Below are positions 1 through 40,185 of a stretch of DNA of 64,000 nt, piece by piece. Positions within the stretch are counted from its first letter, which is position 1. Each line of letters opens with the position of its first letter. Source of the DNA: Azolla caroliniana (lineage: Eukaryota; Plantae; Polypodiophyta); the NCBI GenBank assembly GCA_043228905.1, contig JBHGNT010000007.1, forward strand, positions 5,270,001-5,334,000, written 5' to 3'. The translations under genes and the position numbers were made by a program. The notes under the pieces are model-generated. The model searched no databases. It saw only the letters and a list, made by a program, of their open reading frames with translations, and was not told the DNA's origin.

Positions 1-3000
1 ATCAAATGAAAGAACTTGGACACCTTGCCATAGTTGTGGTAAATCTGGAGCAAAGTAGATGTGTCCATGTTTGGCCTGGACCTCAATTTCAAGGGTCTCA
101 TCGATATTGGGGCTTATAATTTCCAAGCCTTTGATGCCCCTGCAATCCATATCCATATACATTAATTGTAATTATTTGAAAATGATGCTGCCAATGTAAT
201 TATTTTGAAAATACACAATCAGCCATAAAAATAACTCTAGCCCCTGAAAAATGATTGAGCAAATGAAATGATATTCCAATAAGACAATCATCCTACAAGA
301 ATAAAACTATTATAATAACCATGAATTGCCTACCTCTGGCTTGGAATCGACTGATCCTCCAATCCTATTAACACTTGAGGATTAGATACAAACTGTGGAA
401 CATATGCAAACACAGTAATGCTAACATCTCCATAGGCTATTTGATTCTTGAAGTCCATAATAGTATATATGAGGTTATCAATTCCCGTGAAGTTTACTTG
501 GGGAGTATAAACCAAAGAGCTTCCAACCACTTCGGCTTTTCCATAAAATGGGCCCTGTTTCACAGAATTATGGGGTCAAGCACAATGCATCACAAATACT
601 AGAACGAATTAGGGCATTACCAGATACTTTATTTTCTTGAATATGAATATAGCCTGAGTTCATATTATCCCATCAAACTGCTATCAGTGAGAGGTTGAAA
701 AATGGACGAATCTTTTGGTGGGATGTTCAAGTTCACTGATCCAAACTATTCAGTTTGGAAGTCTAAAATGAGGGACATGCTAGTGTGTAAAGATCTGTGG
801 TTGCCGGTGCAATATGGCAAGGACAGACCTGACAAGATAGATGCCCTCACTTGGGAATCCATGCATCTAAATGTAGCCGCATACATACTTCAATGATGAG
901 ACCGAAGTAGATGTATTGTGGAAGAAGATAGGAGGTATGTTTGAGACAAACAACACTTTGAATAGAGTTTCCGTCTTTAGGAAGATAGTGAGGTTGAGAT
1001 ATCAGGATGGCTCAAGCATGGCTGAGCACCTAAATGCCTTTCAAGGGTTGATTAATAAAACCATCTCTCTAGAAATACCTCTAGCTGATGAGGTATTAGT
1101 CTTGCTGTTGCTAGGCTCTCTTCCAGACAACTGGGAGACACTTGTGGTGACTTTAGGTAACTCAACACCTCAAGGCAAACAACTGACCCTAGACATGTTG
1201 AAGCCGAGTTTGCTGAATGAAGAAGCTCGATGAAAGGACAAAGAGTCCAACTTTGACCATAAGGACTTAATCATAGAAAGTGACTCTAGTAGAGGAAGGG
1301 GCAAGTAGAAAGGTCCCCAAAACAGGGACAAGTCCAGATCTAGGTCGACGTCCAAAGGAAGGCTCTTCCAGAAGAACCAGGGCACTTCCAGAAGAACTAC
1401 CGACACTATAGAAAGGACAAAGGGGGAGCTAAGGGTGTTGAGCCGAAAAAGATTTTGGACAACAAGAACACCTTAGACATTGCTGTGAGTGAGGAGGACA
1501 TGTTGTTCGTTAGTGAACAGAATTGTGTAAACCTTGCATATGGTGAGTCCACTTGGGCAGTTGACTCAGGTGCATCATTCCATCTGACTCCCAAGAGAGA
1601 ATGTTGCTCATCCTACATAGCTGGAGACTACGGATATGTGAAGATGGGAAATAAGCATGCTTGCAAAATCGTTGGAATTGGTAATGTGTGTTTGCTGACA
1701 TCTACAGGTTGCAGAATGTATGCCATGTTCCGGATATCAGACTGAATCTGATATCAGCCAGATGGCTAGACGATGAAGGATATAATGGTAGTTTTTAGAG
1801 GGGCATGTGAAAATTCTGCAAAGGTAATCTGATAGTGGCTCATGCCCAAAAGCAAAATACACTTACGTGATGCATGCACAACTGTGCCGGAATGAGGCAA
1901 ATGTAGCAACCGAAACAGCCGGTGAGTTTTGGCACAAGAGGCTCAGCCATATGAGTCAAAGGCGAATGCAGATGCTGGCTGAAAAGGAACTCCTGCCGGA
2001 GGTAAGAAATATGCATCTAGATAAATGTATTGTCTTCCTGGCCAACCAGCAAAACAGGGTTGCCTTTCACCCTAGGCCTCCGATGAGGAGGAAAGTTGCT
2101 TTGGAATTGGTGCACACAAATGTATGTTATGTTGATGCAAAGTCACATGCTGGTGCACAATACTTTGTAACGTTTATAAATGATTACAGCCGAAAGTTGT
2201 GGGCTTTTGACCAAGTGCTGTCCGTCTTCAAGCAATTCCAAGCAAGAGCAAAAAGGGAGTCTGGACAAAAGTTGACAGCTGTCCACACAGACAATGGGGG
2301 CGAGTACAGAGGGCAGCTAGAGGAGTACTGCCGATGCGAGGTGATTAAAATTGAGTATGCAAAACCCAAAACTCTTGAGCTAAATGGTATGGCCGAAAGG
2401 ATGAATAGAACAATCATGGAAAAGGTCCGATGTATGCAGTCACATGCCAAGCTTGGAAAGACCTATTGGGCTGAGGCGTTGATGAAGGCTATTTACATTA
2501 TAAACAAGTCTCCCTCAGTGCCACTTGATGGTGATGTCCCACAGAGGACATGGACAGGAAAAGATGTGTCCTACCGAAGATGTACATATGTCTAGCATAT
2601 GTACATGTGGCAAAGGACCAAAGATCAAAATTGGACAGCAAGTTCCGACCATGTATATTCTTGGGGTACTGTGAGGACTAATTTGGCTATAGATTATGGG
2701 ACCTAATACACAAGAAGGTCATCAGGAGCTGGGACATAGTCTTTATGGAGGATAAGACCATTGTTGACTGGGAAATGCAAAGACCAGGGTCATCCCACCA
2801 GCCGACCGACATATGGAAGCCAGCTGAAGCAGCCGAATCTGGATTGACTCATACAAGCTGAACAGAATACCAGCCGATCGACAACTGGCAGCCGGCTGAT
2901 GAGTATTGGGAGCCGGCTCATGTACATATTGAGCTGGCCGGCAGAAGGCAGCTGGCTGATGCACTGGAGGTGGCCGCCTCCGATGAAGCTGAATCAGATC

Positions 3001-6000
3001 CAGATGAAGGGCCGCCTATGGCAATTGAGCCAGAGCCAGCCTTTGATAGAAGAAGGTACCCCCTAAGGAGGAGAGCCCCTTGCCAATATCCAACCAGAGA
3101 GTATGTGTTGCTGACTGATGAAGGGGAGCCGGAATGCTTTGAGAAAGCAATGATTGATGCCCACAGAAAGGAGTGGTATTATGCCATGCAAGACAAAATG
3201 GATTCCTTGCATGAGACCCACACATATGAGCTGACTGAGCTGCTGAAAGGAAAAAAGGTACAGAGAAATAAGTGGGTACACAAATTGAAACTTAAAGAGA
3301 ACAGAAATCCACCTAGATACAAAGCCCGCATTGAGGTGAAGGGTTTCCAGCATAAAAAAGGTGTAGATTTCGATGCAATATTTGCTTTAGTGGTTAAGAT
3401 GACATCCATTAGAACTGTGCTAAACATTGCAGCCAACATGAACTTGGAGATAGAGTAGGTGGATGTCAAGATTGCTTTCTTGCATGGTGATCTAGAAGAA
3501 GAGATCTACATGCAACAACCTGAAGGATTTGAAGAAAGAAAGAAAGAAAGATATATTAACGTCTTTTAAGAGGCCAAAATGGCCTATAAGACCGAGTAAG
3601 AGATTACATCTTAAATGTTTTCTCGTCTTTGAGAACAAATCAAAATAAAGTAAATATTACACAGTAAATATAAAAGTAAATAAGATGAAAAGAAAAGAGA
3701 CGAGAGAATCTGGTTTTTGGCACATGCGAGATTCTCAAGTTAGGTGTATTGTAGCTTTTGTCTCCGAAAGATCTCTATCATAGGTCAATCCAGAATGGAA
3801 ATGTCTCCGAAGCGAGGGAAGCACCTACGATGGCGGGAGATAATGGCTTTTATTTGTCGATGACAAGGGTGTCGAGGTCGTGGTCCATGGCGCTGGGGCC
3901 TACGTGCACGGCAAATTGCCATTGCCCGATCAATCGTAACCCCTTTGTTATATCCTGGTCTGGATCCCATTTCTGTATCCTGGGGTTGACTTCTAGCATT
4001 AGGAGTGATGGAGCTAAAGAAAGTTGTGATTGTTCTTTGTGGATGAGCTTGTGTGGCTGTATTCTTCAACAACTTTTCCCGATGTCTCTTGAGCTCGAGC
4101 AAGAAAAGTCCTAGGCATCTTTGGTCCTCATATTCCATTACCTTGCGTAGTGGGCCAAAGCCTTGTTTAAAGAGGCAATGGTATCTCCCTTTGATTTCAT
4201 AAAAGACACCACAATGACAAACATAGTGTTCTTCAGATTCCACTCCTTGATGACACAATTGGCAAATTCTCTCTTCTAGAGGTAGTCGTGTATATCTGCC
4301 CACCTCAATCTGTAGCTGATGTGATGAGGTTCGCAGCTACCCTATCACACTACGCAGCGCATAGGATACATGTATGTCCATATAAGGTGGCCTTATGACA
4401 AATCCATCCTCCGATGTATGTAAGAAGTGTGTCTTATAGTGGGCCATCTTTGTACCAAGTGCTATTTTGGGGCTGATCCATGTTATCTTGTTTTCTAAGT
4501 TAATAATATCAGTTTGGATCACTCTATTCTTTTCCACTTTGGTCATATTGAGATGGGGACAATCCAAGCTATATTGGAACGGGGGTAGTGCATTTATACT
4601 CATGCCATGTGACTCGAACCATTGCTGCATTTCAGCATACCAACAGTGAGTGTCTCCATTTTCAGCCAATTGTCTTGATGACATAATTGCCAACCTTGGG
4701 TACCTTCGTTTAGGGAGCTCCCAAAGACGTTGGATAAATGTCACTGATCGGAACAATGCCTCGGTTATTATAGGTGCTGCTCCCATCTCTGCCCGGATTA
4801 TATCGTGGGGCACCGATGCTTTGCTCCTTATCATGCGAGCAATCATTGACACTAAAGGTCTCTCTAAATCTTTCCAATGATTTGCCTTGTTAAGACTCGG
4901 TTCCCATGTCTCTACTCCATAGAGAAGAGTTGGTGTGACAAGTGTATCAAATAACCACAGCTTAGTCCGTGGCTCTTGGAACTGCAAATGTGCACATTGT
5001 CTTTCGAGAGCACCCAGGGCTGCATATCCACAAGAAAGTCGGGCACAAGCGGCCTCTTGTAAGGAGAACCTAGGTCCTGTAAATGTTATTCCTAGGTATG
5101 TGTAGGAGCGTGTGTATTCCACCTTTTCCTCTCCCAAGAAGAATTCTGGTTCTGATCTTGTTACCCATGCTTGGGTGGTGTTAAACACCATCACTTTAGT
5201 TTTATTCATGTTGATTGACAAACCTTTGTCCGTACAAAATAGTTTTAAGGCATTTAGATGTCTTTGTAGTCCCTCCGGAGAGTCAGAGATCAGCACAATA
5301 TCATCAGCATATAGTAATATCTGTATAGCTATACCTGCTAGGTGTGCTCCGGAACCACCAAATCTCTCTATGTACTGTGATACCTCATCTATATAGAGAC
5401 CGAAGAGTGTGGGGGATAGTGGGCATCCTTGCTTCACGCCAATTGTGCTGGCCACCGCCTCTGACAATCCCTTAGGAGTGCATAGATACCCCATTGCATA
5501 TCTATAGGAACACCAATGGCCTCTAGCCACTGCATAAGCCGAGCACGTGGCACAGTGTCAAAGGCTTTTCGAAAATCCACAAAGCAGCAATAAATCCTCT
5601 TATTGTGGGCTCTGCCCTCCTCAATAAGGGCCCGGAGGGTGAATATGTGATCCAAAGTTGTGAAACCCTTCCGAAAGCCTGCCTGTCCAATTGAACGGCA
5701 GCCATTTTGCTCTGCCCATATACTCAATTCTGATTCCAGAATCGAGCCATATAGTTTAGCCAAGTAATGGCCAATCATGATTGTCCTATAGTTGCTTGGC
5801 ATCATGGGGTCTCCACTCTTAAGGATTGGCACAATGGTATGCTGAGTCCATCTAGTAGGAAAACCTTCGCACATGGCTCTATTAAAGATGCGTGCTAGCA
5901 ATGGGAGCAAGGTGTCACGGGCATAGATAAAGTGTTCACCCACCAAGCCATCATGATCTTGGGCCTTCCCGAATTGTAGCCTATCAATGGCATTTCTTAC

Positions 6001-9000
6001 ATTTTGTGGTGTAAAGAAGGTTGATTCATGTGGGCGTGAGGCATTCGGGTGGGGAAGAGGAGGTTGCCCCGGGGTATCATCTAGGACCTTTGCATATTCG
6101 TGCCACACCTGAGGTGAGGTCAGTTGTGTGGTGGGTTGCCTCTCATTAAACATTTTCCATGCTCTTTTACTCTCTCGTCCTAGAAACAAGCGATACAAAT
6201 GATCTTCAAATTTAGCCAAATACAATCTCTTCTTCCTCCTTACGAGGCGTTGGAAGGTTGCTCTCGCTTGGTTGTATGTATAAGTTATATCACGTTGCAA
6301 GCATCTCCTTGTATCACGACATTCATCATCATACCAACTATTTTGTATTACTCTACTGAGTTTGGGGGGGTTAGCCGTTGTGTGAGGGAAGGCTTTTGTG
6401 GCTGCTTTATGCAATGATTTGGATAAACCTTGGGTAAGTTCTTCAAGGGGTGCAAAAGGATCCAAATCTAGCATGCCATTGTATACACCACAACTATAGA
6501 CATCAATTGTCTCGCGAGTGAATAGATACCTAGCCAGCCCACTCTCCTTAGCATATACATTGTGCATCCATCCTTTACCTCAAAGCGTAGATATGCATGA
6601 TCAGCTGCCAAGCCAATAGGTCTTCCCGATATAGTGAACACTTTTATTTCAGGTATAAGAGATGGAGATCCCATTAGATAATCGACTGTGCTTGAGCCCC
6701 CTTTTGGGTTCCAACATGTCAAAGCATCTGATCCAGGCCATTGTGACAAGCCATTATATATCACAAGTCCATGCGCGCTTCCCAAGGCTAGAAAGTGTTT
6801 TCCATATTCAGTTATAGCACTCATATCTTGAGCTTTTCTCTTTAGACCAACCTCTTCCACCATAACTTCTCCATAGACAGCCTCGTCAGTGTTAAATATA
6901 GTTGTTTGTTCATCCTTGGTTCGTGCATTAAAATCTCCTAATAGTATTATATCCCCCATAGTAGCAAATCTTATGATATCATCATATAGTGGTAGATATG
7001 GTGATTCACCTAGAGGTGCAAACCTTGAATAGGCAGGTGGAAAGTAGCAAATTGCAATATATAGCTCCCTAAGATCCCCTCTTTTTATGCATATCCACAT
7101 GTAGCGTGCATCCACATCCTTATGTACAACATGCACTCTACCATGGAGCTCCTCTTTGTATAGCATAGCCACTCCTCCCGAACCTCTAGTGCTTCCTTGT
7201 GTCCGAGGTTGGGGGCGACATATTGACTCCTATCTGTATCCTTGGACCTCGGGGAGTTTGCTAGCCATACATTGGTGAGTCTCTATATACATAGCAATAT
7301 CTGTGTTTTTCAATGTATCTTCAAAATATCCGACATCTGTCCGTAGAGAGCCGTTGCAATTCTATATGGTCATGCGTAGGGTCTCATAGGCCATATATCG
7401 TCATGCGGTTCTCTTCTCTGTAATAATGACCTTGCCGTCTCTATATACGGCCCATTTACCTTCCTTTCTTGCATCAAGCACTCGTGGCATGTTTTCTTTG
7501 CGGTGTGCCACTTGGGCTGGAGTGAGATCGTCATCTAAGTATATCTTTTCACCCTTGAGTGCCTTTCGTTTAGAGAGGAAAGCTTTTTTCTTGTCAATAT
7601 CCATGAAGCGGATGATAAGGGCTTTAGCTCTAGACTCATCTCTTCCCACTCTCCACGCCGAAGAAAATGGAATATCCGATGCTCCAATCTTGGTTGCGAG
7701 ATTCTTGGCATCTTCTTGTGGACTTCCCTTTTCGGCCCAACCAACCACTCGTACATGCAATGCACGAGCTTTCCTCTTTGCTTCTTCTTCTAAAGTAGCA
7801 TTCATCATTGCCATCCTATCCATGGATGTTCCTTTTTGCTTTTTTACTACCTCTATCCAAGGAGCATTTGCTTTAATTTTGTTTTGGGCGTGCTCGGCTT
7901 GAGCTTTGGCATCTTTGGCGATGTTTGCCCATGTTTGCATTTCCTTCGTGACATTGGCTTTCACTGTAGAGATGCATCTTTCCACTGCTTCTTGTCCTTT
8001 TTCGAAATCCACTTTTATAGCTCCTAACTCAACCTTACTTGAGGATATTTCATCCTTAAGGTATTGTGTCATGTCATCCTTGAGCTCTAAGTGTGATTTC
8101 TCCACATGGCTTATAATGTCTTTCCGCATCTCTTCTAATAACTCAGCCTTGATAGAGGCGTACAATTCTTATTTCTGTTTCTCTATCTCCTTTTTCATTT
8201 CTTCCTTTAGTGCTATTTCGATATCTTCTCTAATACGGTTGATCTCTTGCGCAATCAAATGGCGTAAAAGATCATGTTTCCCATTTTCGACATCGAATGG
8301 AATGTCGGATGGGGCTTGCGTTCTAGGTTCCTTATGCGCCCTTCTGACACTATTCAGGTCCCGTCCTTTTCGTCTATGATAACTTCTTGTGGTCTTCAAT
8401 AGATCTAGACCCTCGTCATGCGTGTTAAGATCCATCTTTTCAGTGTTTGTCCCTTCGGACTCCATGGTGTGTTGAGGGCAAAAAGAATGGAAGTTACTAC
8501 GGGGCAGAAAGAATACAGGAACAGAGTTGGCAGAAGATACAGGAAATCAGATTAGGAAGAGAACGCACAAGATCAGGCATTGCAGAAAACACAGAGGACA
8601 GACATTTCAGAAAAGACAGACAGAGCCAAAACCCTAAACGCAAAGCATAAACCCTACAGAAAGAAAGAAAGAAAGAAAGAAAGATATATTAATGTTTTTT
8701 TAGAGGCCAAAATGGCCTATAAGACCGAATAAGAGAAAGAGAGCAGAAGGAAAAGAAAACCTGGTATGCCGGTTGAGAAAGAGCTTGTATGGGCTGAAGC
8801 AAGCTCCCCGGCAATGATATAAAAGTTCGAATCCTTCAAGGTAGATCATGGATTCCACAAAACACAAGCCGGCCATTGTGTTTTTGTGAAGAGATATGAT
8901 AGAAGAGATTTTATGATTCTCCTATTATATGCTGACGACATGCTTGTTGACGAATAGGATGTAAAGAAGATTGCAAGTTTGGAAAAGGCTTTGAGTAAGT

Positions 9001-10146
9001 CCTTTGCAATGAAAGATTTAGGTCCAGCAAAGCAGATATTGGGGATGCACATAGTTCGAGACAAGACAAAGAACATGTTATGGCTGTCATAGGAAAAGTA
9101 CATGACAAAGGTGCCCCAAAGATTCAACATGCAGAATGCCAAGCCAATCAGCTCGACATTGCCAACAATTGTAAGCTGAATGCAATCAATGTATAAAGAC
9201 CAAAAAGGATAAAGCTGAGACGAGGAAGATACCATATGTCTCAAATGTGGGAAGCCCGATGTATGCTATGGTGTGTACCAGGCCAGACATTGCATACGCT
9301 GTTGGAACTATAAGAAAGTACATGAGCAATCCCGGAAAGGAACATTGGGCTACAATAACGTGGGTACTCAGATACCTGAGAGGCACCTTGAGTGTTTGCC
9401 TCAGATACGGCTTAGGGAAACCTGTGCTTGAAGGGTGTACAGACTTTGATATGACGACTGATGCTGATTCCAGCCGATCTACATCTGGGTGACCTATGTA
9501 GGGGGGACCGTATCATGGCAAAATCTAGGTTGCAAAAGTCTATGGCTTTGTCAACCATAGAAGTTGAGTACATGGCGGCTGTAGAAGCCAATATGGAACT
9601 AATATGGATGAGAGATTTCATGAGTGAGTTAGGATTGAGGCAAGATCAGTTCCTACTTCACTGTGATGATCAAAGTGTGATCCACCTTGCTAAGAATGCT
9701 ACCTACCACTCTCGAACAAAACATATCCAGAGGAGATATCATTGGTTACGAGAAAGTGTGATCCACCTTGCTAAGAATGCTACCTCCCACTCTCGAACAA
9801 AACATATCCAGAGGAGATATCATTGGTAACGAGAGAGAATAGAAGAAAAGGAATTTACCCTTGTAAAGATCCATACAAATGATAATGGATCAAATATGCT
9901 GACGAAAGTTTTGTCTATGGATCAAATAGGCATGGTCGACTCTCCCATACAAGAGTGAAGGGGGAGTTTATTATGAAATGTTGTCCCTCCTTATGGGAGA
10001 AGAGCCGATTCGACTAGAGATCGATTCGGCTAAGAGCCGGCCGAGTATATGTGCCGGCCTGAGAGCCAGATAAAGGATTGAGAACCGACTATCTAGTTGA
10101 GGGCCAGCTAAGAGTTGGCTATCTGGCTAAGGACAAAAATGTAAAT

Positions 10147-10199
<53 letters not shown>

Positions 10200-13100
10200 T
10201 GTATAACCCTAGGCGTGTGAATCAGTGAGACAGAGATACATAATAGAGTAGAACTGAATAGAATAAGTGTGAGAGTGAGAGTGAGAACGATACAGTGAAA
10301 AAGGAGTGTGGACAGTGGTGTTAATCTGTCTGCTGAGACAAAGGCCTGTTCAAGGTTGTGGCCTTGACGGAACTGCCCTTTCCCTAGTCGGCTAGGAAAG
10401 CTGAGAATATATTTTGTACACACTTTGATAGTGATTTTGTTCTGGAGACAGTGGGGTCCCGTGGTTTTTTCCGATTAGGGTTTCCACATTAAATCTCTGT
10501 GCATTGTTTTTCTTGCCTTGTTGTTTTTCATTCCTGTTTGCTAGTCGGCTGAGTCTGAGTCCATATTATCCCGTGATTAATTACCACAGAGGTTGATTGA
10601 TAGATAATGACCCCTCTGAACACAACCAACAACTTTTATTCTACCACAAGCAACTATAACCAACACATTATGATTCCTATACCTTGCATAATGAAAGAAA
10701 ATTAAACTCAGGCAATCCAACTGAGGCGGACAATTGGAACAAGGCGGATATAATGGACAGGAGATAGAAGGGGCATCTGGCACATATCACAGTGCTAAAA
10801 TGACATTTCCTGAAACGGTCATATGACATGAGCTGGTACCAATTTGTACAACATAATACCCACACTGACTAACAGAAATCAAAATTTGATTGGAGATATA
10901 ACTCTCTGTCACCCTCCAGGCACTGGCCAAAATGAGCTCAACAAAGTTCTTCTGCCTTACTCCCTATCCTTCACCACATCAATGCCTCCCATCTGCCAAT
11001 TCTGCTTGCCCTCGAGCCTGCCTCACCCCTTATCTTCTGGTAGGGCGGTAAATCTCTTTAATACAGTCAACATATTTTCATTCTATGTGCCTTTGCAGAG
11101 GTTTTGCAGCAAGTAGATGTTCAGTATGTTGCGTTTCTGCAATAAGTGTTAAAGCTATATAATGTGCTTTACTTTCTATGCCAGCTTCTAAGATCATAAT
11201 AACAAAACTTTCATTTACTATTCGATCATGTATCTTTTAACATACAAATGTTCTAGGTTGGGTTATATACTTTGTTCATTCCATCAATTTCTTTATGAGG
11301 AAAGAACCTAAATAAGAAGAGCTTAATCAAAACCCCCTTAGTCACGTTCTAGGGGTAGAGTACAAGAGGATACCTTGCATACTCCTCCTAACTTCGGCGA
11401 GCCATATGAAACATAATCGTTTAATAAAGGATTGAATGAGACAAACTTGTTAATCCAAGACCAAACTTCATCCTTCATGGCAATCGGTTTATTCGAAACT
11501 GCCAACCATAATACAATTTAGGTAAGAGTTTCCATAATGGGTGTACACTAACAGAGCAAGCTGATAATAGAATGAGAGTATCAACAAAAAGAAAGCACCA
11601 GATTATAGAGACGAGGTGCATTTACACGGAGATAAAGTTTTCTTCCACATTCATCAATGTTTTATGAAAGACCCCAACTAGGTTCTGTCATCAATAAAAA
11701 TCCAAAAACAGATCGGGACTGCAAATAATGCATACCACTTACCATAAAAGGAAAGATCAAAGTTGAAGGTTGACTTCCCTTGATACAGGATAAGTTGAAC
11801 AGCCAGCCGAACATCAGTGGCAACATCGATATATGGAGTCTCACATTTTAGCGTCTCTTGTGATGTATTGAAGCTTCCTAAACGTGTCTCAATGTCACCA
11901 AAATTACAAGAGAAAGATATTATTTGCATCAGATTTTCCCCATATAAAGTTATTGTTGTATGTTCTTTTGCAGGTAGAAGCGTAGGTATCACATGGCTGA
12001 TTGAGACCGCTTCAGTACTACCTATTAAAAAAATAGTAAACATTTTATATGCAAGAAAATTTAAGAAGTTCATGTAGCATTTTGTTTCTCTCTTCTTTTC
12101 CAAGGATATCACATTATTTAAATGTGCAAATTACACAAAATACACAACTAGCATGAAACCTGGACCAGAGTAAAAGCACTTTAGAACCAACAAAAATGTG
12201 GGAAATAATAGGCATCACAGGAGGCCCTAAAATTGGCAGTGTAGTGAGGTTTACCACCATTAGGTTATGGAAATCATGTTTGCTGAGATTTGATGGCATA
12301 ATTTCAGGAAAAACAAACACAGGGCAAGATTCAGAGAAATTATAATAAATGGGGTAGGAGACGTTGGAAATCAGAAATGTTGTTTACCTGTTTCGCACAT
12401 TGTATTCCCAAGGTAGAGAGGTATAGAGCTCAATTTTCACATAGGAGACACTCAATCAAAAGGGTAGCTGGCTCTAAGCAGCTGTCTTTTTCATTGAGGA
12501 GCTTCGACCTCTCAAAGAGAACAGTACTATTCTAGACAGAGTTTGCAAATGTTGTGGATACTCTTAGGGAATTAACATGATATTTTTGTCTTCCTTCCTT
12601 TCTCCTCAAGGCACCTAGTGTCATAAGATTGTTGAAAACTTCGTACAAGCAACACAGAAAACTCTAATCATTTAAGGAAATACGAAGTTCCCAGCCTCTA
12701 ACCTTTGTTTTAAATATGCGAGATTACATTATAAGGAGCCAAATGATAATATAACAAGAAAACAGAACAAAACAAGTTCCGATTCACAATGTGCATCATT
12801 ATACCTTTCAAAACAACAAATTGATTTTGGCCAAAAATGTTGATGCCTTTATATGTTATGTTTATATTGTAAGTTCCATCTGTTTCCAACCGGAAAGGAA
12901 ACAAATATTTTCCATTATCCCCATCAAACGGGACCCCTGAATATATAAAAGAAGCCTTTGTGTTTATCAAGTCAACAGCAAACCCCTCTCCACCAGAAGT
13001 TCGATTATTTCCAAAAGAATCTTTAGCTTGAATGGTAAAAACTCCAGAAGTTCCAATTAGTACCCTGTCACTTGTACTGATGGTATACGTGCATTTCAAT

Positions 13101-31100: not shown

Positions 31101-34100
31101 TCAACCGAGGAAAGGCAATACTAAAAGTGAAGAGGTAAATGTAGTCACTCATGATAGTGATAATGGAAATGATGTACTCTTTGTTTCATCATGCCATAGA
31201 GAACATGCTTTACTTGCAGATACGGATGGTGACATGCACACTTGGATACTCGATTCCGGTGCTTCTTTTCACATCACCCCTCATCGTGAGTGGTTTTCAG
31301 ATTACATAGGGGGTCGACATGGTGTTGTCCATCTTGGGGACAACTATGCATGTGAAATTGCAGGTATTGGCACTGTGCAATTACAGTTTCAGCATGGTTC
31401 TGCTTTCACACTTCAGCATGTATGGCATGTACCTCAGCTCAAGAAGAGCTTGATTAGCACAGGACAGCTAGATGATGATGGATTTCACACAACCTTTGGT
31501 GATGGGAAATGGAAGATTTGTAAGGGATCTAGAGTTATTGCCAAGGGTAGTAAAAGTGATACTTTGTATCCTCTCCATGTATCTAGTGTGAGTGACCATG
31601 TTGTTGCCATAACCGAGCAGCCTAGTGTTTCTTTGTGGCATGGCCGGTTGGGACACATGAGTGAAATTAGTATGAAAGTACTTTCTCGTTTGAGTTACTT
31701 GCCGTGTCTTCGTTATGCTGATTTTGAACATTGTGATCATTGCATTTATGGCAAACATGTACAAACATCTCATAAAAAGCCTCTTTCGCTGAAGTCGTCC
31801 CCGCTTGAGTTAGTACATTCAGATGTATGTGAGATGCCAGGGCTATCATTAGGGGGAAAGAAATACTTAGTCACGTTAGTCCATGATGCTACACGGAAGG
31901 CATGGGTTTACCCTATTCGTAGCAAGGATGAAGTGCTCGACCAATTTCGAACATTTTTGGCATTAGTTGAGAATCAAATTGATAAGACACGTAAGTGTCT
32001 TCGCTCTGACAATGGTGGGGAATATGTGTCCAAGGTTTTTCAAGCATTTTGTGACAGCAAAGGGATAAAGAGGGAACTCACTGCCCCTTATAATACACCC
32101 CAAAATGGAGTTGCAGGGCGTATGAATCGGACTATTCAAGATAAGGTCCGTACTATGCTGTCTCATGCTGCGTTACCCCATGGTTTTTGGGCAGAGGCTG
32201 TTATGACAGCTGTTCACTTGATTAATCGGTCACCTAACAGGTCTTTGGGAGGGGGAATACCCCAAGAAGTGTGGCCGGGCAAGCCACCTTCATATGCTCA
32301 CTTGAGAGTGTTTGGCTGTGAGGCTTTTGTGCACATTCGTAAAGAACAACGCAACAAACTTGAGCCAAAGTCCTGCAAATGTATTTTCCTAGGATACGGT
32401 GACAAGGGTGAAATGGGGTATAGATTGTGGGATCCCGAGAAAAGAAAAATAGTACGCAGCAATGATGTTATCTTCCGGGAAAATCGCATGCATAAACAAC
32501 CCGAAAAGACTGAGGAAGTACATAGGGTTGTATTCCGAGAAGAAATACCTTTAAGACAGGAAAATGTGCCCGCTGTACAGCAGCAAACACCTGCTGTAAA
32601 ATTACCTGCAAATGCAGAAAATGAGGTTGGAAATGATCATCCAGTCTTTGCCAATAATGATGAGCCACCAAATGTGCAGGAACAGCTAGAACAGCAAGCT
32701 GTGAATGCTGATTTGCAGGCTGAAATGCCTGGACTGCAAATTGAAAATGATGATTTGCAGGCTCAACAGCTACCAAACAATGAGCATTGGGTTAGGAGAT
32801 CATCTAGAGTTACTAGACAGCCTGACAGATTTGTTCCTGATGCAAACAATGTGGCTGATTATGTCATGGTAACTGATTGTGGCGAACCGACTTGCTTCAA
32901 GGAAGCAATGGACAGACAGGACAATAAGAAATGGTATAAAGCCATGTTGTCAGAGATGGAATCTCTTGAGAAAAATGATACTTGGGATTTGGTGCAATTG
33001 CCTAAAGGGCAGAAAACACTTCCATGCAAATGGATTTATAAAATGAAGGTCATTTCTGATTCCTCGCCAACGTACAAAGCAAGATTGGTTGCAAAAGGAT
33101 ACAAGCAGGAATATGGAGTTGATTTTGATGAGATCTTCTCGCCTGTAGTCAAGATGACTACATTAAGAATCATTTTGGGCTTAGTTGCAGCTGAAGATAT
33201 GGAGCTCATACAGATGGATGTGAAGACCGCCTTTTTACATGGCGATCTGCATGAAGACATATATATGCAACAGCCTGAAGGTTTTGTCACTAAAGGCAAA
33301 GAGAAGATGGTTTGTAAGCTCAAAAGGAGTTTGTATGGGTTGAAACAAGCACCAAGAGAATGGTATCATAAATTTGATGCATTTATGCAGTCTCAAGGTT
33401 TTCGTAGAAGTCAAGTGGACCATTGCTTGTACACCAAGAAGGCAGGAGATGGCAGCCTGATTATCTTGGTTTTGTATGTTGATGATATGTTGATTGTTGG
33501 CAAGGATGGTCATGCCTTGAATTCATTGAAGCAAAGCCTTCATGGCAGCTTTGATATCAAGGATCTTGGTGATGCAAATCACATCCTTGGCATGCGAATA
33601 CTCCGAAACCGATTGAAAGGGGCACTCTTTCTATCTCAGCAGGAGTATATCTCTAAGGTTTTGTAGCGTTTCAATATGGAGGGGGGGAAAACAATTGGGG
33701 TTCCATTGCCTCCATATTTGAAACTCAGTGCAGAAGACAGCCCTACATCTGATGATGAGAAGGCTGAAATGGCTAAGGTTCCATATGCTTCTGCCGTTGG
33801 CAGTTTGATATATGCGATGGTTGCTACACGCCCTGATATTGCCTTTGCAGTGGGAGTGGTTAGTAGGTATATGGCAAATCCCGGCAAAAAGCATTGGGAA
33901 GCGGTAAAAGGTATTATGAGATACCTCAAAGGCACAAAGGACTTGTGTATTTGCTTTGGAAAGCAAAAGGCATCTGTCGTTGGTTTTACGGATGCGGACT
34001 ATGCTGGTCACGTAGACTGCAGGAAGTCTACTTCTGGTTATGTGTTTACTTTCACAGGAGGAGCGGTCTCTTGGATCTCCAGACTACAGAAGTTTGTCTA

Positions 34101-37100
34101 CTACAGAGGCAGAGTATGTTGCTGCCACTGAGGCATGCAAAGAAGCTTTATGGCTTTCATATCTAGTGAGAGATCTTGGCATTACAGAGTTACCTATTCT
34201 TCATTGTGACAGCCAGAGTGCTATCATGCTAGCTCGAAATCTCGTCTTTCATGCAAAGACGAAGCACATAGAGGTGAAGTATCACTTCATCAGAGATGTA
34301 CTTGACAGCAAGAACATTGAGCTTGTCAAAGTACATACAAATAATAATCCTGCAGATCTTCTCACGAAGGGTCTTCCAGCTGAGCGATTTGCTCATTGCC
34401 GACAGATGATGGGAGTTGGATAGATGTATGTATGCAGTTCAGCTTTGTACATACTTGGACTTAGCTGACTTTTTTTTTGTTTTTTTTTTCTCACGGCACA
34501 TTGCCTTTAGGTGGGAGGTTGTTGGGAATAAAGGGCCATCGTGCCTTTTATTAGTGCACGAGTGTGAACGCACTCGTAGCACACTTTTCAGTTGTATATA
34601 CATAATATCTAAAAACCAAAAAAGAGGTACACTCTTTTGTACCCAAGACGGCGTGCATCTCTCTCTCTCACTCAGACTCTCTCCCTCTCTGTTTTTGACC
34701 TAAACCCTAATCCTCGTGCTGCCTTCACGCTTTGGGTCCCAGTTATGGTACCAACGCCTGCCTGACCCAGCTGTTTCTAAAGAGGTGAATGTTGATAATA
34801 CAAATATCCATGAAGATGTGGATATTACTTTCAGAAGACCCTCATATGATACAACTCCTGATGGACAGGTGCAGTTCTTATTCCTCAGTTGATTAGTTTG
34901 CATAAACATTTGCAACTACAAAATGAAATTGTCCATATCATACGACAAAAATGTACTCGCTCACAATTATAGCATATCAAGTTGTGATCTGAGCTGTGTC
35001 ATGTATCCATCAGAATATGGCAATTAGAGTATCCATTTCTACCATCCAAAAAACCTGGAAGAATTCCTTTAACAAAACCCAGACTATCTACATTACGCTT
35101 TTACCTATGCAAATGCAGTTCATAAATTGTTTGCTCTCTTGGTGATCATGTTTAACAGAATTGGCATGCGTTCTTGAATAAACATCAGTTCAAGCTGTTC
35201 TGATTCTCAGATCATTCCATCATAAGCATTTCAGTGATCATTTAAAATGCACAAGTGAAATGGGACCTGACATTTATTACTGTTTTCACACATTTTGGGT
35301 CTTTTTGCCATTTTGTGCATGGTCATGTATATATTTTTGGAAGAGAAGGAATACTGTGTGAGAAAAAATGACAAAAAGCTACTTTTTGCACGATACGTTT
35401 CTAAATGAATGATGCTCAATGAATTGTAGTTAAGATATGTTTTGAAACTTCCAAGTAATTTCCAATAACTAAGTAATGATCCAAAGGACATAACCTCAGA
35501 AGGTCACCTCAGATACAAGGAGATGATACCAGCACAGAGAAAGAATGAAAGAATTGTTAGCATCTTTTAAGAGGCCAAAATGGCCTACAAGATGAACAAG
35601 ATATTACATCTTCAAATGTCGTCTCATTTTTTAGAACAATAAACCAAACTAAATTAGCTAGGTAAAAAAGTAAATAGAAACAGAATAAACTGTGACAAAG
35701 GAATTGTCATCTACACATGTGAGATTCACAAGTCAAATATATTGTAAATTTCGTCTTCGATAGATCTCTAGCATTGGTCAATCCAAAATGGAGAGGTTTC
35801 TAAAACGAGGGAAGCACCTACCATGCTGTGAGATAATGGCCTTTATTTGTCAACGACAAGGGTAGTGAGATCGTGGTTCGTGAGACTAGGGCCTACGTGC
35901 AAGACAAGTTTCTATTGCCCAATTTACTGTAACATTTTGCAATGTCTTAATCAGGAGCCCATTGAAGTAGCCCTTGATTGACTTGTAGCATGAGTTCAAG
36001 TGATGGGCTAAAGAGAGAAAGAAAAATATATTAAAATCTTTTAAGAGGCCAAAACGGCCTATATGACCAAACAAGAGATTGCATCTTAAGTGTTGTCTCA
36101 CCTTTGAGAACCACAAACCAAAATAAATGTTAGTAAGTAAAAAAAAGTAAATAAGATAAAAAGTGACTAAAGAAAGTTGTGATTGTTCTTCATTAATGAC
36201 ATTGTGTGGTTGTATCGTTGTCCTTCAACAACTTCTCACTATGTCTCTTGAGTTCTAGCAAGAAAAGCCCCCAATAGCATTGGTCCTCATATTCCATTAC
36301 CTTGTGTAGTGAGCCCAAGCCTTGTTTAAAGAGCCAATGGTATTTCTCTCATCTCATAAAAAACAATACAAAGACAAACATAGTGCTCTCCACAAAATTG
36401 GCAAATTCTTTCTACTAGAAGTATTTGTGCATATCTACCATCCTCAATATCTAATTGATGTGAAGAAGTTTGCAGCTGCCCCATCACACAGCACAGTGCA
36501 TAGGACAGATGTATGTCCATATAAGAGAGACTGATGATGAATCCATTGTCTAATGTGTCAGAAGTGTGTATTATAGTGGGCCATCTTCCTACTAAGAGAC
36601 GTTGCGGGGCTGATCCACGTTATTTTGTTTTCCAAGTCGATAAGATCAGTTTGGATTACTATTCTTTTCCACTTTGATTATGTTTAGAGAGAAAATTAGA
36701 TCTTATCTTATCCCTCCACAGACAACAGGTTCCTTGATTCATCCTCAAAATTTATTGTTTTACTTTATTTTCTTTTAACTTTACACATTCAGCATAGACA
36801 CCATATATATATAGCAATAAAAACCTGAATAATATCAAGAATCACTAAATAAAATTAACATACCTGGCAGCACGGTAAAATAAAATGGAGAATTTGATAT
36901 ATATTCTCGTCTATAACCGACACTCATAGAATATTTTCCAGACAAAGTGGGATAAAAGGAAATTGCTTGATATCCTGTTGATGTTTCCCCACCTTTAACT
37001 ATTGTTGGAGATGTAAATTCCCTGTCAAATAATCTAATAGTTACTGAAAACTCCACATAACTCAGTCTTTTGAGAAGGTTCTGAGAAGGATCAAATAATG

Positions 37101-40100
37101 TGATATTCAAGATAACCACAGAACCTGCCTTGAGTATATCCGGTGTTAGCCTGCCTACACAATGAGGAATCGATACTTGTCCTGAATAAATGACAAGTTA
37201 TTAATAATATTCATGAAGATCTGAATGTATTCCACATAAGATATCTAATGAAGGATCTAAGTGTTTACCAACAAAAACATCATATGCAAAAGGTGATCCT
37301 GGCACATAAAATGTATTGTTTCCAATAAAAACATAGTGACGCCCTGCCTTAGCAGTCCTAAATTCAATAAGGACAAATCCAGGTTCAGCTTCATTCTGTG
37401 CATTTAATTGTGGATGCAAGTCCATATTCCCAGCTTCATCATAAATTCTGATTGAATACAGCAAGGAATTTGAAGTTCCTAATGGTGAGTTGAACTTATC
37501 AACAACTTTCAGTCTAAACTTAGCTATGGTGCCCGAAATAAATGTATGTTTATCGTCCACCCAATTTCCTTGGCACAGAGGTAGGTATAATGAGCCTGAA
37601 ATAAATCAATTTTCCAGATGTCACGGGTGACAGAAAGAAAGATGCTTCATACAAAATATTGTGAGGTTGAAAAACCTTGCCAAATCATGTTGGAGGAAAG
37701 AAAACTTAGTTGATGACTGATATACAGAACAATTAGGTCTCCAAGAATGAGCATGCTTTTTAATATAGACTATTCTCTTTAGAAAATGGATATTATAAAG
37801 AAAACATGATGTTCGGGCAATTGATATAAACGAACCAGTAATGACAGTAAATGTTAGTGAAGAACGACCAAAAATCTTTCCGTTGCTAGAAATGTATACT
37901 TTTTGAGGTCCAAGTTGATCTGCCACAAACGTCAGATTATGGTATCCATTGCGGTCAATAAAGACATCAAAGTTAGGATAAGTTGTTGCATTTTTTCCAA
38001 GATTTACAACTGTCACATTCCATGGATAGCTAAGGTCTGTTCTTCCAGTCTTTTCTGAAACAACATTGCCAAACTGATCACGAGGTGACACACAGAGCCT
38101 TATCCTATCCCCTGGGTAATATATATTCGACGTGTCAGCCCAAAAAATTGAAGACGCGTCTGGATCTACCTCACCTACATGCAAACTTCATTATATGTTT
38201 TTGAAACTTTTTGCATATTTGGATATTAAAAGAAATTTTGAACCATGATTATTACCTGCGGCAACCATAATGGTTGCCCCTAAGCCTATCATAGCAAACA
38301 AGTCAGCTGAAGAGCCAAGATCATTAGGCTTTGTGCTATCGAAGACTACGACACGCAAAAGATACTGATAAACATTGCTTGCATATCTGTTCTTGATCAC
38401 ACATGAAACTGGGTATGACCCACGTACCAAAGCAGTAGGGGTGCTCCCAATGCTGCAACTAGAGCCAGGTGCCCTAACATGAATGTCTGATAGTAACCAT
38501 ATACCAACTTGAATCCTGTCCGGAGAAAATGGGCCCTTGTACATACTGCAAGATTTGCAATTTGGACTTGTATCACAAACAAGCTCTCGGCCATAGTAAG
38601 TCTTGCAACTAGGATTATCACAGTCAACAATATAAGGTTGCAGGAAAAAATTGAAAGGCTTTCCCTCAATAACTGTAACTCTCCTTCCTTTCAGACTTAT
38701 CTTCGTGCAATCTTTGCTTAGCATGTACGCAGATTCCACCAGTGTAGCTGTAATATATAGCAAATTTGATGAAAATTTCATAAAGTTGACGGGCAAACGA
38801 GGTGGGAAACAAATAAGTCTATAAATAATATTTTATTTTAAACTCAAAAATTACCAATACCACTTTCTTACATGATTCCTACGAGCACTATGTAGTGGGA
38901 TATTTGTACATCCTAGAGGGTGGATCCATTTAAGTAATGAATTGGGCATGGAAACTGTATATGTGTAGACCATAACTTTCCTGACTACTATATTGCAGAT
39001 GACCATAAGGCCACCTTAATGCCTTATCTCTAAACTTAATTTGAGAACTAATTTCAAGTCAATGTGTAAAGTCTTGCCATCCCAGCTCGTTTAGCCACCG
39101 TATTATGCCATAGAGCAGTGAGATGAGAACGACTATTACCTATCTGTAAGGCTAGGTGATTGTAAGGCCTCCCAAATCCCCATGCCCCTTTATTTGACTT
39201 CTGACTTCATAATTTTGTGTGTGTAACTAACAACTAGGAATAGAGTGTTGTCAACTTCGCCCTTTTAAACACCATATAGTAGCAAACTAGTAGGGATTTG
39301 GGAAGCTAAAATTGGTTTGTGGAACTTCCAGTGAGCCGTGTAACACCAACTGCACCACCAATCTAGCTAAAATTGCATAGCAATGAAACACGTAGAAGTT
39401 CTGTTAAACTCCATACCCTTTCACTGCAGTTTTCTATTATGCATGCATGAAAATGAATCCCATGCCATGTTATAAGAAAATTCTCCCAAAATTTTGCAAG
39501 ACCAAAGTATGGGGCAAAATCCAAATGGAATATATGTGTATACAAAACCTGCCGAATTCCCATATAAATTTTTGGTATATTGTCTCAAATTTCTGCTTGA
39601 AAAGGAGAAATATATAGATTTTTTCGCTGCTGATTTCATATACAAATATTTTGTGGGACATTTTCTCACAATTTCGGTATTATTTTATGCCCCAAAAGAG
39701 TAAAAAAAATATTATCCTGCTAATGGAGAAAGAACAAATGTAGGGATGAAATATTTGAAAAAAATACAGGAATCTGTTTCAGCTGAATTCCTTCTGCGAG
39801 CTTGCATATTTTGTCACAATTTTTCCTAGTATTTCGCGAGTGGTTAAAAGGAAAAAATCATCAAGTGGGAAAGAAAATTATAGAGATATAGAGATAGATA
39901 GATGGATATAGTATTTTGTGAAGAAAAATCATCCCGGCAATAAAGAAAGGGGGAAAAAACAAATTTTCCTGCGAAAACCTGACCAGAAAAACTAGCCCGT
40001 GCATTGTATGAGAAACCATTACCTGAAAGGAGAGATTGAAGTAAGAGGATGATGACATGAGACAAAGGAGCTTTGTAGTCATAATGTGAGAACTTTCCTC

Positions 40101-40131
40101 CTCTTTGCTTTTTCGAACTCCTTACATCCAT
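1..40131 (-). CDS. GEX2: Giant GEX2-like secreted/membrane filamin-Ig repeat protein, 21 exons in window, 3' end outside window
   Basis: GT-AG exons in continuous frame (5'->3' on minus): 40131-40023, 38747-38256, 38174-37836, 37595-37269, 37181-36864, 29581-29249, 25539-25189, 24188-23853, 23435-23079, 22216-21902, 21013-20669, 20008-19679, 18553-18224, 18129-17749, 17653-17330, 14498-14181, 13113-12805, 12021-11743, 11498-11374, 554-334, 139-<1. Exons 1+2 give a signal-peptide-like [19 protein letters not shown]. Exons 3-17 carry filamin-type motifs (G..F.I..xDx(Y/F)GN ... G.Y.L.I ... I.GSPF.F.V). The last exons read [16 protein letters not shown] / [30 protein letters not shown] / [16 protein letters not shown], which match from memory the conserved C-terminal region of angiosperm GEX2. 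About 2,126 codons in window. Orthology versus paralogy not established. Confidence 0.85.
3785..7394 (-). pseudogene. LINE ORF2: AP endonuclease + reverse transcriptase + C-terminal CCHC region (disrupted)
   Basis: [16 protein letters not shown] start; [19 protein letters not shown] and ADHAYL (APE); [43 protein letters not shown] and LLYADD (RT); [24 protein letters not shown] at the C-terminus. Stops at 7362, 7230 and 4337; frameshifts near 6500 and 5520. Confidence 0.92.
7401..8465 (-). pseudogene. LINE ORF1 (coiled-coil + RRM-like domain), one premature stop
   Basis: ORFs 8169..8465 and 7401..8165 are in the same frame, separated only by TAA GAA. Heptad-rich N-terminal half, then [32 protein letters not shown] typical of LINE ORF1 proteins. 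Ends 6 nt before the ORF2 ATG. Confidence 0.82.
8659..8736 (-). mobile_element. Short 3'-terminal fragment of the same LINE, directly abutting the 5' end of the full-length copy
   Basis: (gaaa)n gatatattaatgttttttagaggccaaaatggcctataagaccgaataagaga is nearly identical to 3535-3603. Confidence 0.9.
9969..10576 (+). repeat. 3' LTR of copia-1, containing a (CA)n microsatellite at ~10151-10194
   Basis: Follows the PPT; its 3' end matches the remnant at 651-675. Termini are degenerate (TA...GA instead of TG...CA). Confidence 0.75.
13175..13755 (-). repeat. Dispersed ~600-bp non-coding repeat (inverted copy of ~40885-41515)
   Basis: caccttatcgacccatatg (13621) is the reverse complement of catatgggtcgataaggtg (~41008); tcaatgacacatacttcaag matches cttgaagtatgtgccattga; catatgagagtagct matches agctactctcatatg. 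Confidence 0.8.
14871..15195 (-). mobile_element. RTE-X-like LINE fragments (3' end + internal ORF2 piece)
   Basis: gaaagatatattaacgtcttctaagaggccataatagcctataagac matches the 3' end; ~15045-15195 is homologous to ~4495-4645. Confidence 0.8.
21131..21573 (-). mobile_element. Possible orphan 3' LTR with adjacent copia-type PPT
   Basis: Termini tgcgag...cttgca (imperfect inverted repeat). Adjacent ctctcccctcaag reads as PPT cttgaggggagag on minus. No internal domain or TSD seen. Confidence 0.4.
22635..22980 (-). mobile_element. Clustered RTE-X-like LINE 3' fragments
   Basis: ORF2 C-terminal remnant (tccaagatggaaagatctctgaagc) followed by the terminal motif ttttaaaggccaaaatggcctatcagac at ~22780. 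Confidence 0.75.
25892..26664 (-). mobile_element. Two tandem RTE-X-like LINE 3' fragments
   Basis: Terminal motifs at ~25905 and ~26075. ORF 26412..26657 ([27 protein letters not shown]) is homologous to [27 protein letters not shown] of the full copy. Confidence 0.85.
26665..27995 (+). mobile_element. 3'-truncated Ty1/copia (copia-2): 5' LTR + PBS + gag only
   Basis: LTR tgtta...ttaca at 26665-27151; PBS tagtatcaga at ~27154; gag from 27242 ([28 protein letters not shown], zinc knuckle [14 protein letters not shown]). Sequence switches back to LINE remnants after ~27995. Confidence 0.85.
28050..28790 (-). mobile_element. Clustered, rearranged RTE-X-like LINE fragments
   Basis: [19 protein letters not shown] is homologous to [18 protein letters not shown]. 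Degenerate terminal motif at ~28275; two ORF2 C-terminal remnants at ~28430 and ~28615. Confidence 0.75.
30115..30256 (+). repeat. ~24-bp tandem repeat (about 6 units) in the copia-3 leader, units carrying a TTTAGGG-like motif
   Basis: Unit (t/a)ttagggttttctgcagagcagag is directly visible. Confidence 0.9.
30304..34423 (+). pseudogene. copia-3 gag-pol polyprotein (two premature TAG, one frameshift)
   Basis: [57 protein letters not shown] and [13 protein letters not shown]. Stops at 30709 and 33664; frameshift at ~34095. Confidence 0.95.
35537..36685 (-). mobile_element. 5'-truncated RTE-X-like LINE with a second short 3' fragment inserted at ~36015-36166
   Basis: Terminal motifs at ~35565 and ~36035. 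[30 protein letters not shown] is homologous to the full copy. The inner insertion is flanked by a duplicated ctaaaga (36008-36014 / 36167-36173). Confidence 0.88.

Positions 40132-40180: not shown

Positions 40181-40185
<5 letters not shown>

Follow-up and report, generated by a model that had tools for sequence, protein, structure and literature searches.

The window analysed here is the whole 64,000-nucleotide stretch of Azolla caroliniana contig JBHGNT010000007.1 (positions 5,270,001 to 5,334,000). Every candidate exon found in it lies on the minus strand, and the interval 1-40131 resolves into 21 exons and 20 GT-AG introns, with splice sites set by hand and then rechecked and with the exons analysed singly. 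The features are as follows.

Exon 1: 40023-40131, minus strand; begins with the ATG at 40131 and encodes a basic N-region, then a hydrophobic, signal-like segment; its donor is CAG/GTAATG, phase 1
Exon 2: 38256-38747, minus strand; N-terminal domain of 163 aa, rich in Cys (8 residues) and predicted to be all-beta
Exon 3: 37836-38174, minus strand; Ig module 1, GEX2_N type (Ig_GEX2_N 33.9 bits)
Exon 4: 37269-37595, minus strand; Ig module 2, GEX2_N type (Ig_GEX2_N 56.9 bits, E 2.5e-15)
Exon 5: 36864-37181, minus strand; Ig module 3, GEX2_N type (Ig_GEX2_N 40.6 bits)
Exon 6: 29249-29581, minus strand; Ig module 4, GEX2_N type (Ig_GEX2_N 42.6 bits)
Exon 7: 25189-25539, minus strand; Ig module 5, GEX2_N type (Ig_GEX2_N 46.9 bits)
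Exon 8: 23853-24188, minus strand; Ig module 6, GEX2_N type (Ig_GEX2_N 40.8 bits)
Exon 9: 23079-23435, minus strand; Ig module 7, GEX2_N type (Ig_GEX2_N 40.0 bits); nearest paralogue exon 11 in the module matrix
Exon 10: 21902-22216, minus strand; Ig module 8, distinct Filamin-like type (Filamin 25.0 bits)
Exon 11: 20669-21013, minus strand; Ig module 9, GEX2_N type (Ig_GEX2_N 40.7 bits)
Exon 12: 19679-20008, minus strand; Ig module 10, GEX2_N type (Ig_GEX2_N 40.9 bits)
Exon 13: 18224-18553, minus strand; Ig module 11, GEX2_N type (Ig_GEX2_N 45.7 bits)
Exon 14: 17749-18096, minus strand; Ig module 12, a divergent copy carrying a long insert (Filamin 19.6 bits; own-profile 43 bits)
Exon 15: 17330-17653, minus strand; Ig module 13, Filamin type (Filamin 27.3 bits, Invasin_D3 23.4 bits)
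Exon 16: 14181-14498, minus strand; Ig module 14, Filamin type (Filamin 28.0 bits)
Exon 17: 12805-13113, minus strand; Ig module 15, Filamin type (Filamin 26.2 bits)
Exon 18: 11743-12021, minus strand; TIG/IPT-type E-set module, phase 1-1, strong splice sites
Exon 19: 11374-11498, minus strand; Big_9 first half, phase 1 in and phase 0 out
Exon 20: 334-554, minus strand; Big_9 second half (Big_9 22.3-22.9 bits)
Exon 21, truncated at the window edge: 1-139, minus strand; conserved GEX2 C-terminal region
Putative promoter: 40132-41131, minus strand; four DUO1-type MYB sites (RRCSGTT) at -691, -683, -492 and -262, and a (GA)n tract

The exons sum to 6,345 nt, or 2,115 codons, with no in-frame stop and with a sense codon at every splice junction; the chance of so long a stop-free run, given the local base composition, is negligible. 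A preliminary description of this DNA had given at least about 2,126 codons in 21 exons, of which the exon number stands and the codon count is 2,115 with the hand-placed splice sites. Introns 1-18 are all in phase 1, and 14 of these 18 junction codons encode Gly. The donors of exons 3 (GTTCGT), 14 (GTTGCT) and 4 (GTAAAC) are weak. As that description had also held, the large introns are occupied by transposable elements (TEs); these are limited to the introns and include young insertions with LTRs 99% identical. The C-terminal region continues past the left window edge, and the 3′ end, transmembrane (TM) helix and stop codon fall outside the window. A PPR protein is encoded in the neighbourhood of the gene.

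The DUO1-type motif in the putative promoter was taken from PMC6290024, and four copies occur where 0.55 would be expected, a surplus with P about 0.002 by first-order Markov simulation. These sites offer a lead, and only a lead, towards gamete-specific expression. The hint is weakened because GEX2 of Marchantia lies outside DUO1 control (PMC6290024).

An array of Ig-like domains

Each Ig module occupies one symmetric exon of phase 1-1. A profile built from the modules themselves recovered 15 Ig modules across the window as a whole; each of them lies on the minus strand and within the gene model, and the same scan revealed no extra modules in the introns. Sixteen one-exon modules had been claimed earlier; the arrangement of one module per exon is borne out, the count is 15, and the sixteenth was presumably exon 2. 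In 10 exons the Pfam family Ig_GEX2_N (PF23616) passes its 27-bit cut-off, with scores of 33.9-56.9 bits, and it outscores Filamin wherever both match (e.g. 56.9 vs 16.5 bits). Filamin itself passes its cut-off in two exons and falls slightly under it in two more. The 15 modules form a consecutive array with the TIG and Big_9 domains, leaving exon 2 as the sole domain without assignment. In order, the exons encode a signal-like segment, the Cys-rich N-domain, a run of seven GEX2_N-type modules, the odd module of exon 10, another three of GEX2_N type, four of filamin type, the TIG-type module, Big_9 and the C-terminal region. The gene has about 18 predicted Ig-like domains, compared with 7-8 in Arabidopsis.

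Pairwise identity among the modules is 13-32%, with module pairs scoring far over shuffled controls. Such values mark the modules as old, so the length of the gene is better ascribed to ancient module duplication and insertion than to recent amplification. The origin of the array in one clean block duplication is not borne out by the module matrix, in which exons 9, 11 and 13 are mutually closest and the pairs at lag 4 show just a moderate rise. Against solved structures, the module profile matched filamin repeats, the Dictyostelium gelation factor, FUS1p (9qs0, E 1.4e-10) and FdeC, with the top PDB sequence matches being 2j3s (E 1.1e-20) and 1wlh (E 2.3e-14). Pinello et al. have named the Dictyostelium gelation factor, filamin and FdeC as templates for GEX2/FUS1.

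At the N-terminus, exon 1 encodes a 24-residue basic N-region followed by a hydrophobic stretch, with Kyte-Doolittle peaks of 2.2-2.5 in an 11-residue window. Exon 2 has no Pfam match, and no calponin-homology domain was found in exons 1-2. The single-sequence AF2 model of exon 2 (pLDDT 39) is too poor for use; comparison of this exon with the Atlas gave a lead (0.76) to an Ig-domain cluster, and it weakly matches residues 100-121 of the Selaginella protein P0012.

The extra TIG-like domain of the preliminary description was recovered in exon 18, where Pfam TIG (PF01833) scores 26.7 bits vs a cut-off of 20.9. An AF2 model of this exon is an all-beta sandwich (pLDDT 75). Foldseek found no significant match to it in the PDB, where no sequence match was found either, so the E-set/TIG fold subtype is assigned from the Pfam sequence match alone. 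No TIG-type counterpart occurs in P0019, P0106 or P0121, three relatives that have the C-terminal region in common with the Azolla gene. The Big_9 half-domain, at 22.3-22.9 bits, lies slightly under its 23.6 cut-off because the domain is divided between two exons that were scored separately.

Relatives in ferns, lycophytes and beyond

The predicted protein is a long member of the GEX2/FUS1 family, as judged from its Ig_GEX2_N matches and from a Big_9/C-terminal region collinear with that of GEX2-family proteins; on both grounds the kinship with GEX2 proposed earlier holds. By phmmer, exon 19 matches P0121 residues 537-568 (E 1.6e-4) and P0106 residues 850-893 (E 0.008), exon 20 matches P0019 residues 1934-2006 (E 3.7e-9) and P0106 residues 890-966 (E 2.6e-6), and exon 21 matches P0106 residues 971-1007 (E 1.8e-5). 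Exons 19-21 are accordingly collinear with P0106 850-1007, P0121 537-653 and P0019 1934-2006. Within the array, exon 10 can be anchored on residues 1007-1100 of P0012 and residues 1663-1791 of P0019. Identity to the GEX2-family relatives is 25-35%, and the GEX2_N-type modules lack one-to-one pairing, for which reasons the kinship is placed at the level of the family, not of orthology with a functionally studied GEX2.

Most of the best 150 profile-search matches are protist and archaeal filamin-repeat giants, and seven are plant GEX2-family proteins, with the plant matches among those listed coming from ferns and lycophytes only. Word-index homologue searches returned Ceratopteris P0019, animal filamins and bacterial or unnamed Big_9-type proteins, and no seed-plant GEX2. 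Among the matches listed from a 1.84-billion-protein library, no protein was at least 50% identical over at least three modules; the gene therefore seems to be unannotated or fragmented, and the fragmentation by gene predictors that had been anticipated is likely.

Arabidopsis GEX2 is presented in accounts of Mori et al. 2014 (via PMC13601591; PMC13589550) as a sperm gamete-attachment protein. Its ectodomain, like the one predicted here, is built from filamin-like Ig domains in tandem, and it has a signal peptide where the Azolla product has a signal-like segment; Pfam Ig_GEX2_N was defined on its family. For the GEX2 subfamily, Big_9 is on record together with a TM helix (PMC9777546). It differs in having ~1,090 aa and 7-8 Ig-like domains, as against at least 2,115 codons and 15 Ig modules plus N-domain, TIG and Big_9, and no TIG-type module is on record for it. 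The predicted protein is thus about twice the size of Arabidopsis GEX2 with its 7-8 domains (bioRxiv 10.1101/2021.09.03.458930; PMC13589550), in keeping with the doubling first suggested.

Repeat number as such does not set the gene apart. Similar counts occur in Ceratopteris KAH7281701.1 (16-17) and in Selaginella EFJ32173.1 (15) and XP_024527230.1 (11), so that comparable repeat numbers elsewhere, which the preliminary description had itself named as telling against its claim, are found in part, in public predicted proteins of a fern and a lycophyte. We found no published description of these long fern and lycophyte forms in the literature consulted. The Ceratopteris richardii protein (KAH7281701.1 / A0A8T2QEU6, our P0019; 2,408 aa), annotated as a 'GEX2 N-terminal Ig-like domain-containing protein', resembles the Azolla product in its N-terminal region, Ig modules, Big_9, conserved C-terminal region and one TM helix, which is followed by an 83-aa tail. 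Module by module, however, the identity is only ~25-32%, the order of the modules pairs at just a few anchors, and no TIG-type module separates Big_9 from the last of the filamin modules; the gene model, which covers 430 kb, may be chimeric or unreliable.

The Selaginella and Diphasiastrum proteins (EFJ04876.1, 1,365 aa; EFJ32173.1, 1,810 aa; XP_024527230.1, 1,445 aa; KAJ7541186.1, 1,051 aa) likewise carry GEX2_N-type and then filamin-type modules, 5-15 in number, and in EFJ04876.1 and KAJ7541186.1 these are followed by the collinear Big_9/C-terminal region with a TM helix. Unlike the Azolla protein, all are shorter and none has a TIG match; some lack Big_9 or the TM helix and are hence probably partial models.

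Chlamydomonas FUS1, a plus-gamete adhesion protein (9qs0, PMC13601591), is matched by the Azolla module profile as given above, but it has seven Ig-like domains in ~800 aa, is borne on the gamete without HAP2, and has a receptor, MAR1, that is confined to green algae. Animal filamins and the Dictyostelium gelation factor have the same repeat fold, with filamins forming rod-like chains of up to 24 repeats; unlike the Azolla product, they cross-link actin in the cytoplasm and carry calponin-homology domains at the N-terminus, whereas the gene described here has a signal-like N-terminus, 39 N-x-S/T N-glycosylation sequons and no such domain.

A putative gamete-surface tether and its alternatives

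The GEX2/FUS1 family consists of type-I membrane proteins in which filamin-like Ig domains, joined in a chain, make up the ectodomain. The interval 1-40131 is probably most of one intact long-form gene of this family, encoding, by homology, a gamete-surface tether. To the left of the window would lie ~360 further residues, among them one TM helix and a short tail on the cytoplasmic side, for a total of ~2,470 aa; the Ceratopteris, Selaginella and Diphasiastrum relatives each have one C-terminal TM helix, which lies 260-300 aa beyond the part matching exon 21. Homology to Arabidopsis GEX2 and to Chlamydomonas FUS1 would place the predicted protein on the gamete surface, probably that of the spermatozoid, where it would tether the gamete to its partner membrane ahead of HAP2-driven fusion. 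Scaled from filamin, in which 24 repeats measure about 80 nm, the extended chain may reach ~60-80 nm.

It is conceivable, though unlikely, that the locus is transcribed and that the full 21-exon form is not its main product, the main products being shorter isoforms or transcripts from internal promoters. Exons 2-18 are all of phase 1-1, so that skipping any of them preserves the frame, and the weak donors noted above are compatible with such skipping. Moreover, Arabidopsis gex2 is still rescued by GEX2 versions from which as many as four N-terminal Ig domains have been removed (PMC13589550), so shorter forms can work. Against this, no exon of signal-peptide, TM or terminal type turned up inside the gene model, in which the single signal/N-domain exon and the single Big_9/C-terminal block stand at opposite ends, and all 15 modules remain open with the conserved Gly/Asp positions of the GEX2 family, which argues that each is used.

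The GEX2 family is multi-copy in Selaginella and Ceratopteris, and the present copy could be silent or serve another role. A silent or recently dead paralogue, its frame open merely because too little time has elapsed, is quite improbable: the young intronic insertions and the lack of a corresponding annotated protein among the matches listed would suit it, but the stop-free frame, the 20 intact GT-AG pairs and the confinement of TEs to introns speak against it, as do modules that are not near-identical to any known protein and so do not mark a fresh copy of an annotated gene. Least probable of all is an expressed paralogue acting outside gamete attachment (e.g. in cell-surface adhesion or wall contact), with another copy as the true sperm adhesin, for although the multi-copy family, the low identity to all retrieved members and a TIG insertion missing from the three relatives could point that way, the full GEX2-type layout is retained through Big_9 and the C-terminal region, DUO1-type sites lie upstream, and the literature consulted records no non-gamete function for any GEX2-family member.

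Meaning for the GEX2/FUS1 family

GEX2/FUS1 is the sole gamete-adhesion family common to algae and land plants, and functional and structural work to date has dealt only with the 7-8-domain forms of Arabidopsis and Chlamydomonas. To our knowledge, GEX2 has no known female-side partner in land plants. The hand-curated exon model should be useful to annotation, as public protein sets seem either to lack the gene or to carry it in fragments. A wider and more doubtful proposal is that ferns, whose sperm swim, maintain a small family of GEX2 adhesins of extra length whose size and modules diverge between copies, with the TIG domain gained here. Since skipping or shuffling of symmetric phase-1 exons leaves the frame intact, such copies could conceivably serve as species-specific, long-range tethers, tunable in length or specificity. 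If the reading of the locus as a long gamete tether is correct, it would provide concrete candidates for knockout and binding work in a transformable fern, and the occurrence of 2,400-aa forms alongside free-swimming sperm would show that the length and module content of the ectodomain are evolvable.

Exon structure of the gene

An ORF scan revealed a row of minus-strand open segments within window positions 1-40152 that carry the ending typical of filamin repeats (GSPF..V.PG). With GT and AG sites scored and phase consistency demanded, the resulting gene model comprises 21 exons and 20 GT-AG introns, and was checked exon by exon. The exonic total of 6,345 bases amounts to exactly 2,115 codons, with no in-frame stop in any of the 21 exons and a sense codon at every split, which confirms the open, multi-exon gene of the preliminary description. 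Introns 1-18 are in phase 1, intron 19 is in phase 0 and intron 20 in phase 2; at 14 of the 18 phase-1 introns, the split codon is the conserved glycine that ends a module.

Features of the GEX2-like gene and its large introns (window coordinates; exons numbered from the 5′ end of the gene)
Exon 1, 40131-40023, minus strand: sole ATG of the open segment; basic stretch, then a hydrophobic, signal-like segment
Exon 2, minus strand: 163-aa Cys-rich domain with eight cysteines
Exons 3-9 and 11-13, minus strand: GEX2_N-type modules
Exon 10, minus strand: distinct module with counterparts in GEX2-family proteins of Selaginella (P0012) and Ceratopteris (P0019)
Exon 14, minus strand: divergent module
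Exons 15-17, minus strand: filamin-type modules
Exon 18, minus strand: TIG-type, placed after the last filamin-type module and before Big_9
Exons 19-20, minus strand: jointly encode one Big_9 domain
Exon 21, minus strand: extends past the window edge
29887-34727, plus strand: young Ty1/copia element within intron 5, antisense to the gene
916-3458 and 9247-9829, plus strand: copia remnant in intron 19 (10.8 kb)
3785-8465, minus strand: endonuclease/RT ORFs of a LINE-type element splitting the intron 19 copia remnant

That the 21 exons form one gene is suggested indirectly by a lone signal/N-domain exon and a lone Big_9/C-terminal block at opposite ends, and, again indirectly, by the uniform strand and phase and the intactness of all modules. 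Judged from its sequence, the gene is a real, intact-looking, long-form member of the GEX2 family. Introns 5 and 19 owe their large size to transposable elements, as had been proposed, with copia in the former and copia plus LINE in the latter. The intron 5 element has 209-nt LTRs that are 99% identical and a 984-aa gag-pol ORF at 30712-33666. An 81-nt tandem duplication was also seen in intron 19 (9672-9833), and more copia-type gag/integrase ORF fragments occur far upstream of the gene (55440-57614, minus strand).

Domain content and family relationships

When the gene was scanned segment by segment with Pfam, ten segments exceeded the gathering score for Ig_GEX2_N (PF23616), with 33.9-56.9 bits, and another five reached or approached the cut-off for Filamin (PF00630). 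One segment matched TIG (PF01833; 26.7 bits, cut-off 20.9), and one matched the latter half of the Big_9 domain (PF17963). A profile made from an alignment of the gene's Ig modules (A1) recovered 15 modules and none beyond those when both strands of the full 64 kb were scanned, so the large introns are free of hidden or decayed modules. Sixteen Ig modules had been claimed; the profile detects 15, and the sixteenth was presumably exon 2, for which the Pfam scan gave no match and AlphaFold, run on the single sequence, gave an unreliable all-beta model (pLDDT 39). The array must be old, since its modules are just 13-32% identical in pairwise comparison (exons 9, 11 and 13 being the closest set); both recent amplification and an assembly artefact as its source are ruled out by the same values. 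The exon 10 module matches residues 1007-1100 of Selaginella P0012 (E 1.9e-13) and also has a clear counterpart at residues 1663-1791 of the Ceratopteris richardii protein P0019 (KAH7281701.1, UniProt A0A8T2QEU6).

The extra TIG-like exon reported earlier is upheld by its Pfam match. AlphaFold models the exon as a beta sandwich (pLDDT 75), for which Foldseek found no significant PDB match, so the assignment to the TIG subtype is taken solely from the Pfam score. A TIG match was absent from all six relatives scanned; in P0019 and in the Selaginella and Diphasiastrum proteins P0106 and P0121 (EFJ04876.1, KAJ7541186.1), the gap from the last filamin-type module to Big_9 is 10-18 residues. As far as these sequences indicate, the TIG-type module is lineage-specific and particular to the Azolla copy. 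The C-terminal region is well conserved among these three proteins, of seven plant relatives (mutual E 1e-57 to 1e-124), and is matched by exons 19, 20 and 21 in the same order. All three carry one TM helix, which lies 260-300 residues beyond the part matching exon 21 and is followed by a tail of 83-116 residues. From this spacing, some 360 residues of the gene, including the TM helix, would lie to the left of the window, and we infer a full-length protein of about 2,470 aa.

In a search of solved structures, the module profile matched Chlamydomonas FUS1p (9qs0, E 1.4e-10) as well as filamin repeats, E. coli FdeC and the Dictyostelium gelation factor. The last three are also among the templates that Pinello et al. 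reported for GEX2 and FUS1 (bioRxiv 10.1101/2021.09.03.458930). A profile search of 1.84 billion representative proteins yielded 582 matches at E 1e-30 or better, and the best 150 of these were mainly giant filamin-repeat proteins from protists and archaea. A name look-up placed seven plant proteins among those 150 (from Ceratopteris, Adiantum, Selaginella and Diphasiastrum), most of them labelled "GEX2 N-terminal Ig-like domain-containing protein" in UniProt. Such fern and lycophyte proteins, the nearest relatives among these matches, agree with a fern source for the DNA. Seed-plant GEX2 was not recovered by word-index protein searches. The proposed GEX2 relationship holds at the family level, through Ig_GEX2_N and the collinear C-terminal exons, and the overall interpretation is partly supported.

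Among the matches listed, identity to any exon is at most about 40% by local BLAST and at most about 35% over module-length alignments. Modules score 77-120 bits each against their own profile (43 for exon 14) and the listing threshold was 211 bits, so a protein holding at least three of the modules, or a 50%-identical relative, would be listed. Fragmentation by gene predictors had been anticipated, and no close protein is among the matches listed from the 1.84-billion library; the gene seems to be unannotated or broken up in public protein sets.

Upstream region and possible function

Filamin dimensions imply a reach of tens of nanometres for an extended chain, and by that measure the extended Azolla protein would likewise reach tens of nanometres. 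Its most likely role, to which we give an even chance, would be gamete attachment ahead of HAP2 fusion. Family membership, together with DUO1-type sites, hints indirectly at use in the male germline. Four candidate sites of the DUO1-type MYB motif RRCSGTT (PMC6290024) lie less than 700 bp from the ATG, within 40132-41131 (expected 0.55, P about 0.002). These are a lead only, since Marchantia GEX2 is not under DUO1 control (PMC6290024). A (GA)n tract with GAA-rich repeats occurs upstream of the ATG at about 40180-40480. Head-to-head with the gene, 2.9 kb from its ATG, is an intronless 851-aa PPR (PLS-type) ORF (43013-45568, plus strand), whose protein had no exact match in a 15-billion-sequence collection.

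Gene length among relatives

Compared with Arabidopsis GEX2 and Chlamydomonas FUS1, which have 7-8 Ig-like domains (bioRxiv 10.1101/2021.09.03.458930; PMC13589550; PMC13601591), the Azolla gene is unusually long with its 15 modules. Among publicly available protein predictions from non-seed vascular plants, however, its length is not unusual. With the same module profile, Ceratopteris KAH7281701.1 (2,408 aa) has 16-17 modules, then Big_9, and Selaginella EFJ32173.1 and XP_024527230.1 have 15 and 11, respectively. Beside these comparable predicted proteins, the high repeat number of the preliminary description is not supported as a novelty. The Ceratopteris long-form model KP509_36G059100 (GCA_020310875.1, 2,408 aa) covers about 430 kb, a stretch in which TE and PPR genes are also predicted, and because it encloses other genes the model may be partly chimeric. 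Long fern GEX2 forms are undescribed in the literature found; comparable long forms are already present, unremarked, in public predicted proteomes.
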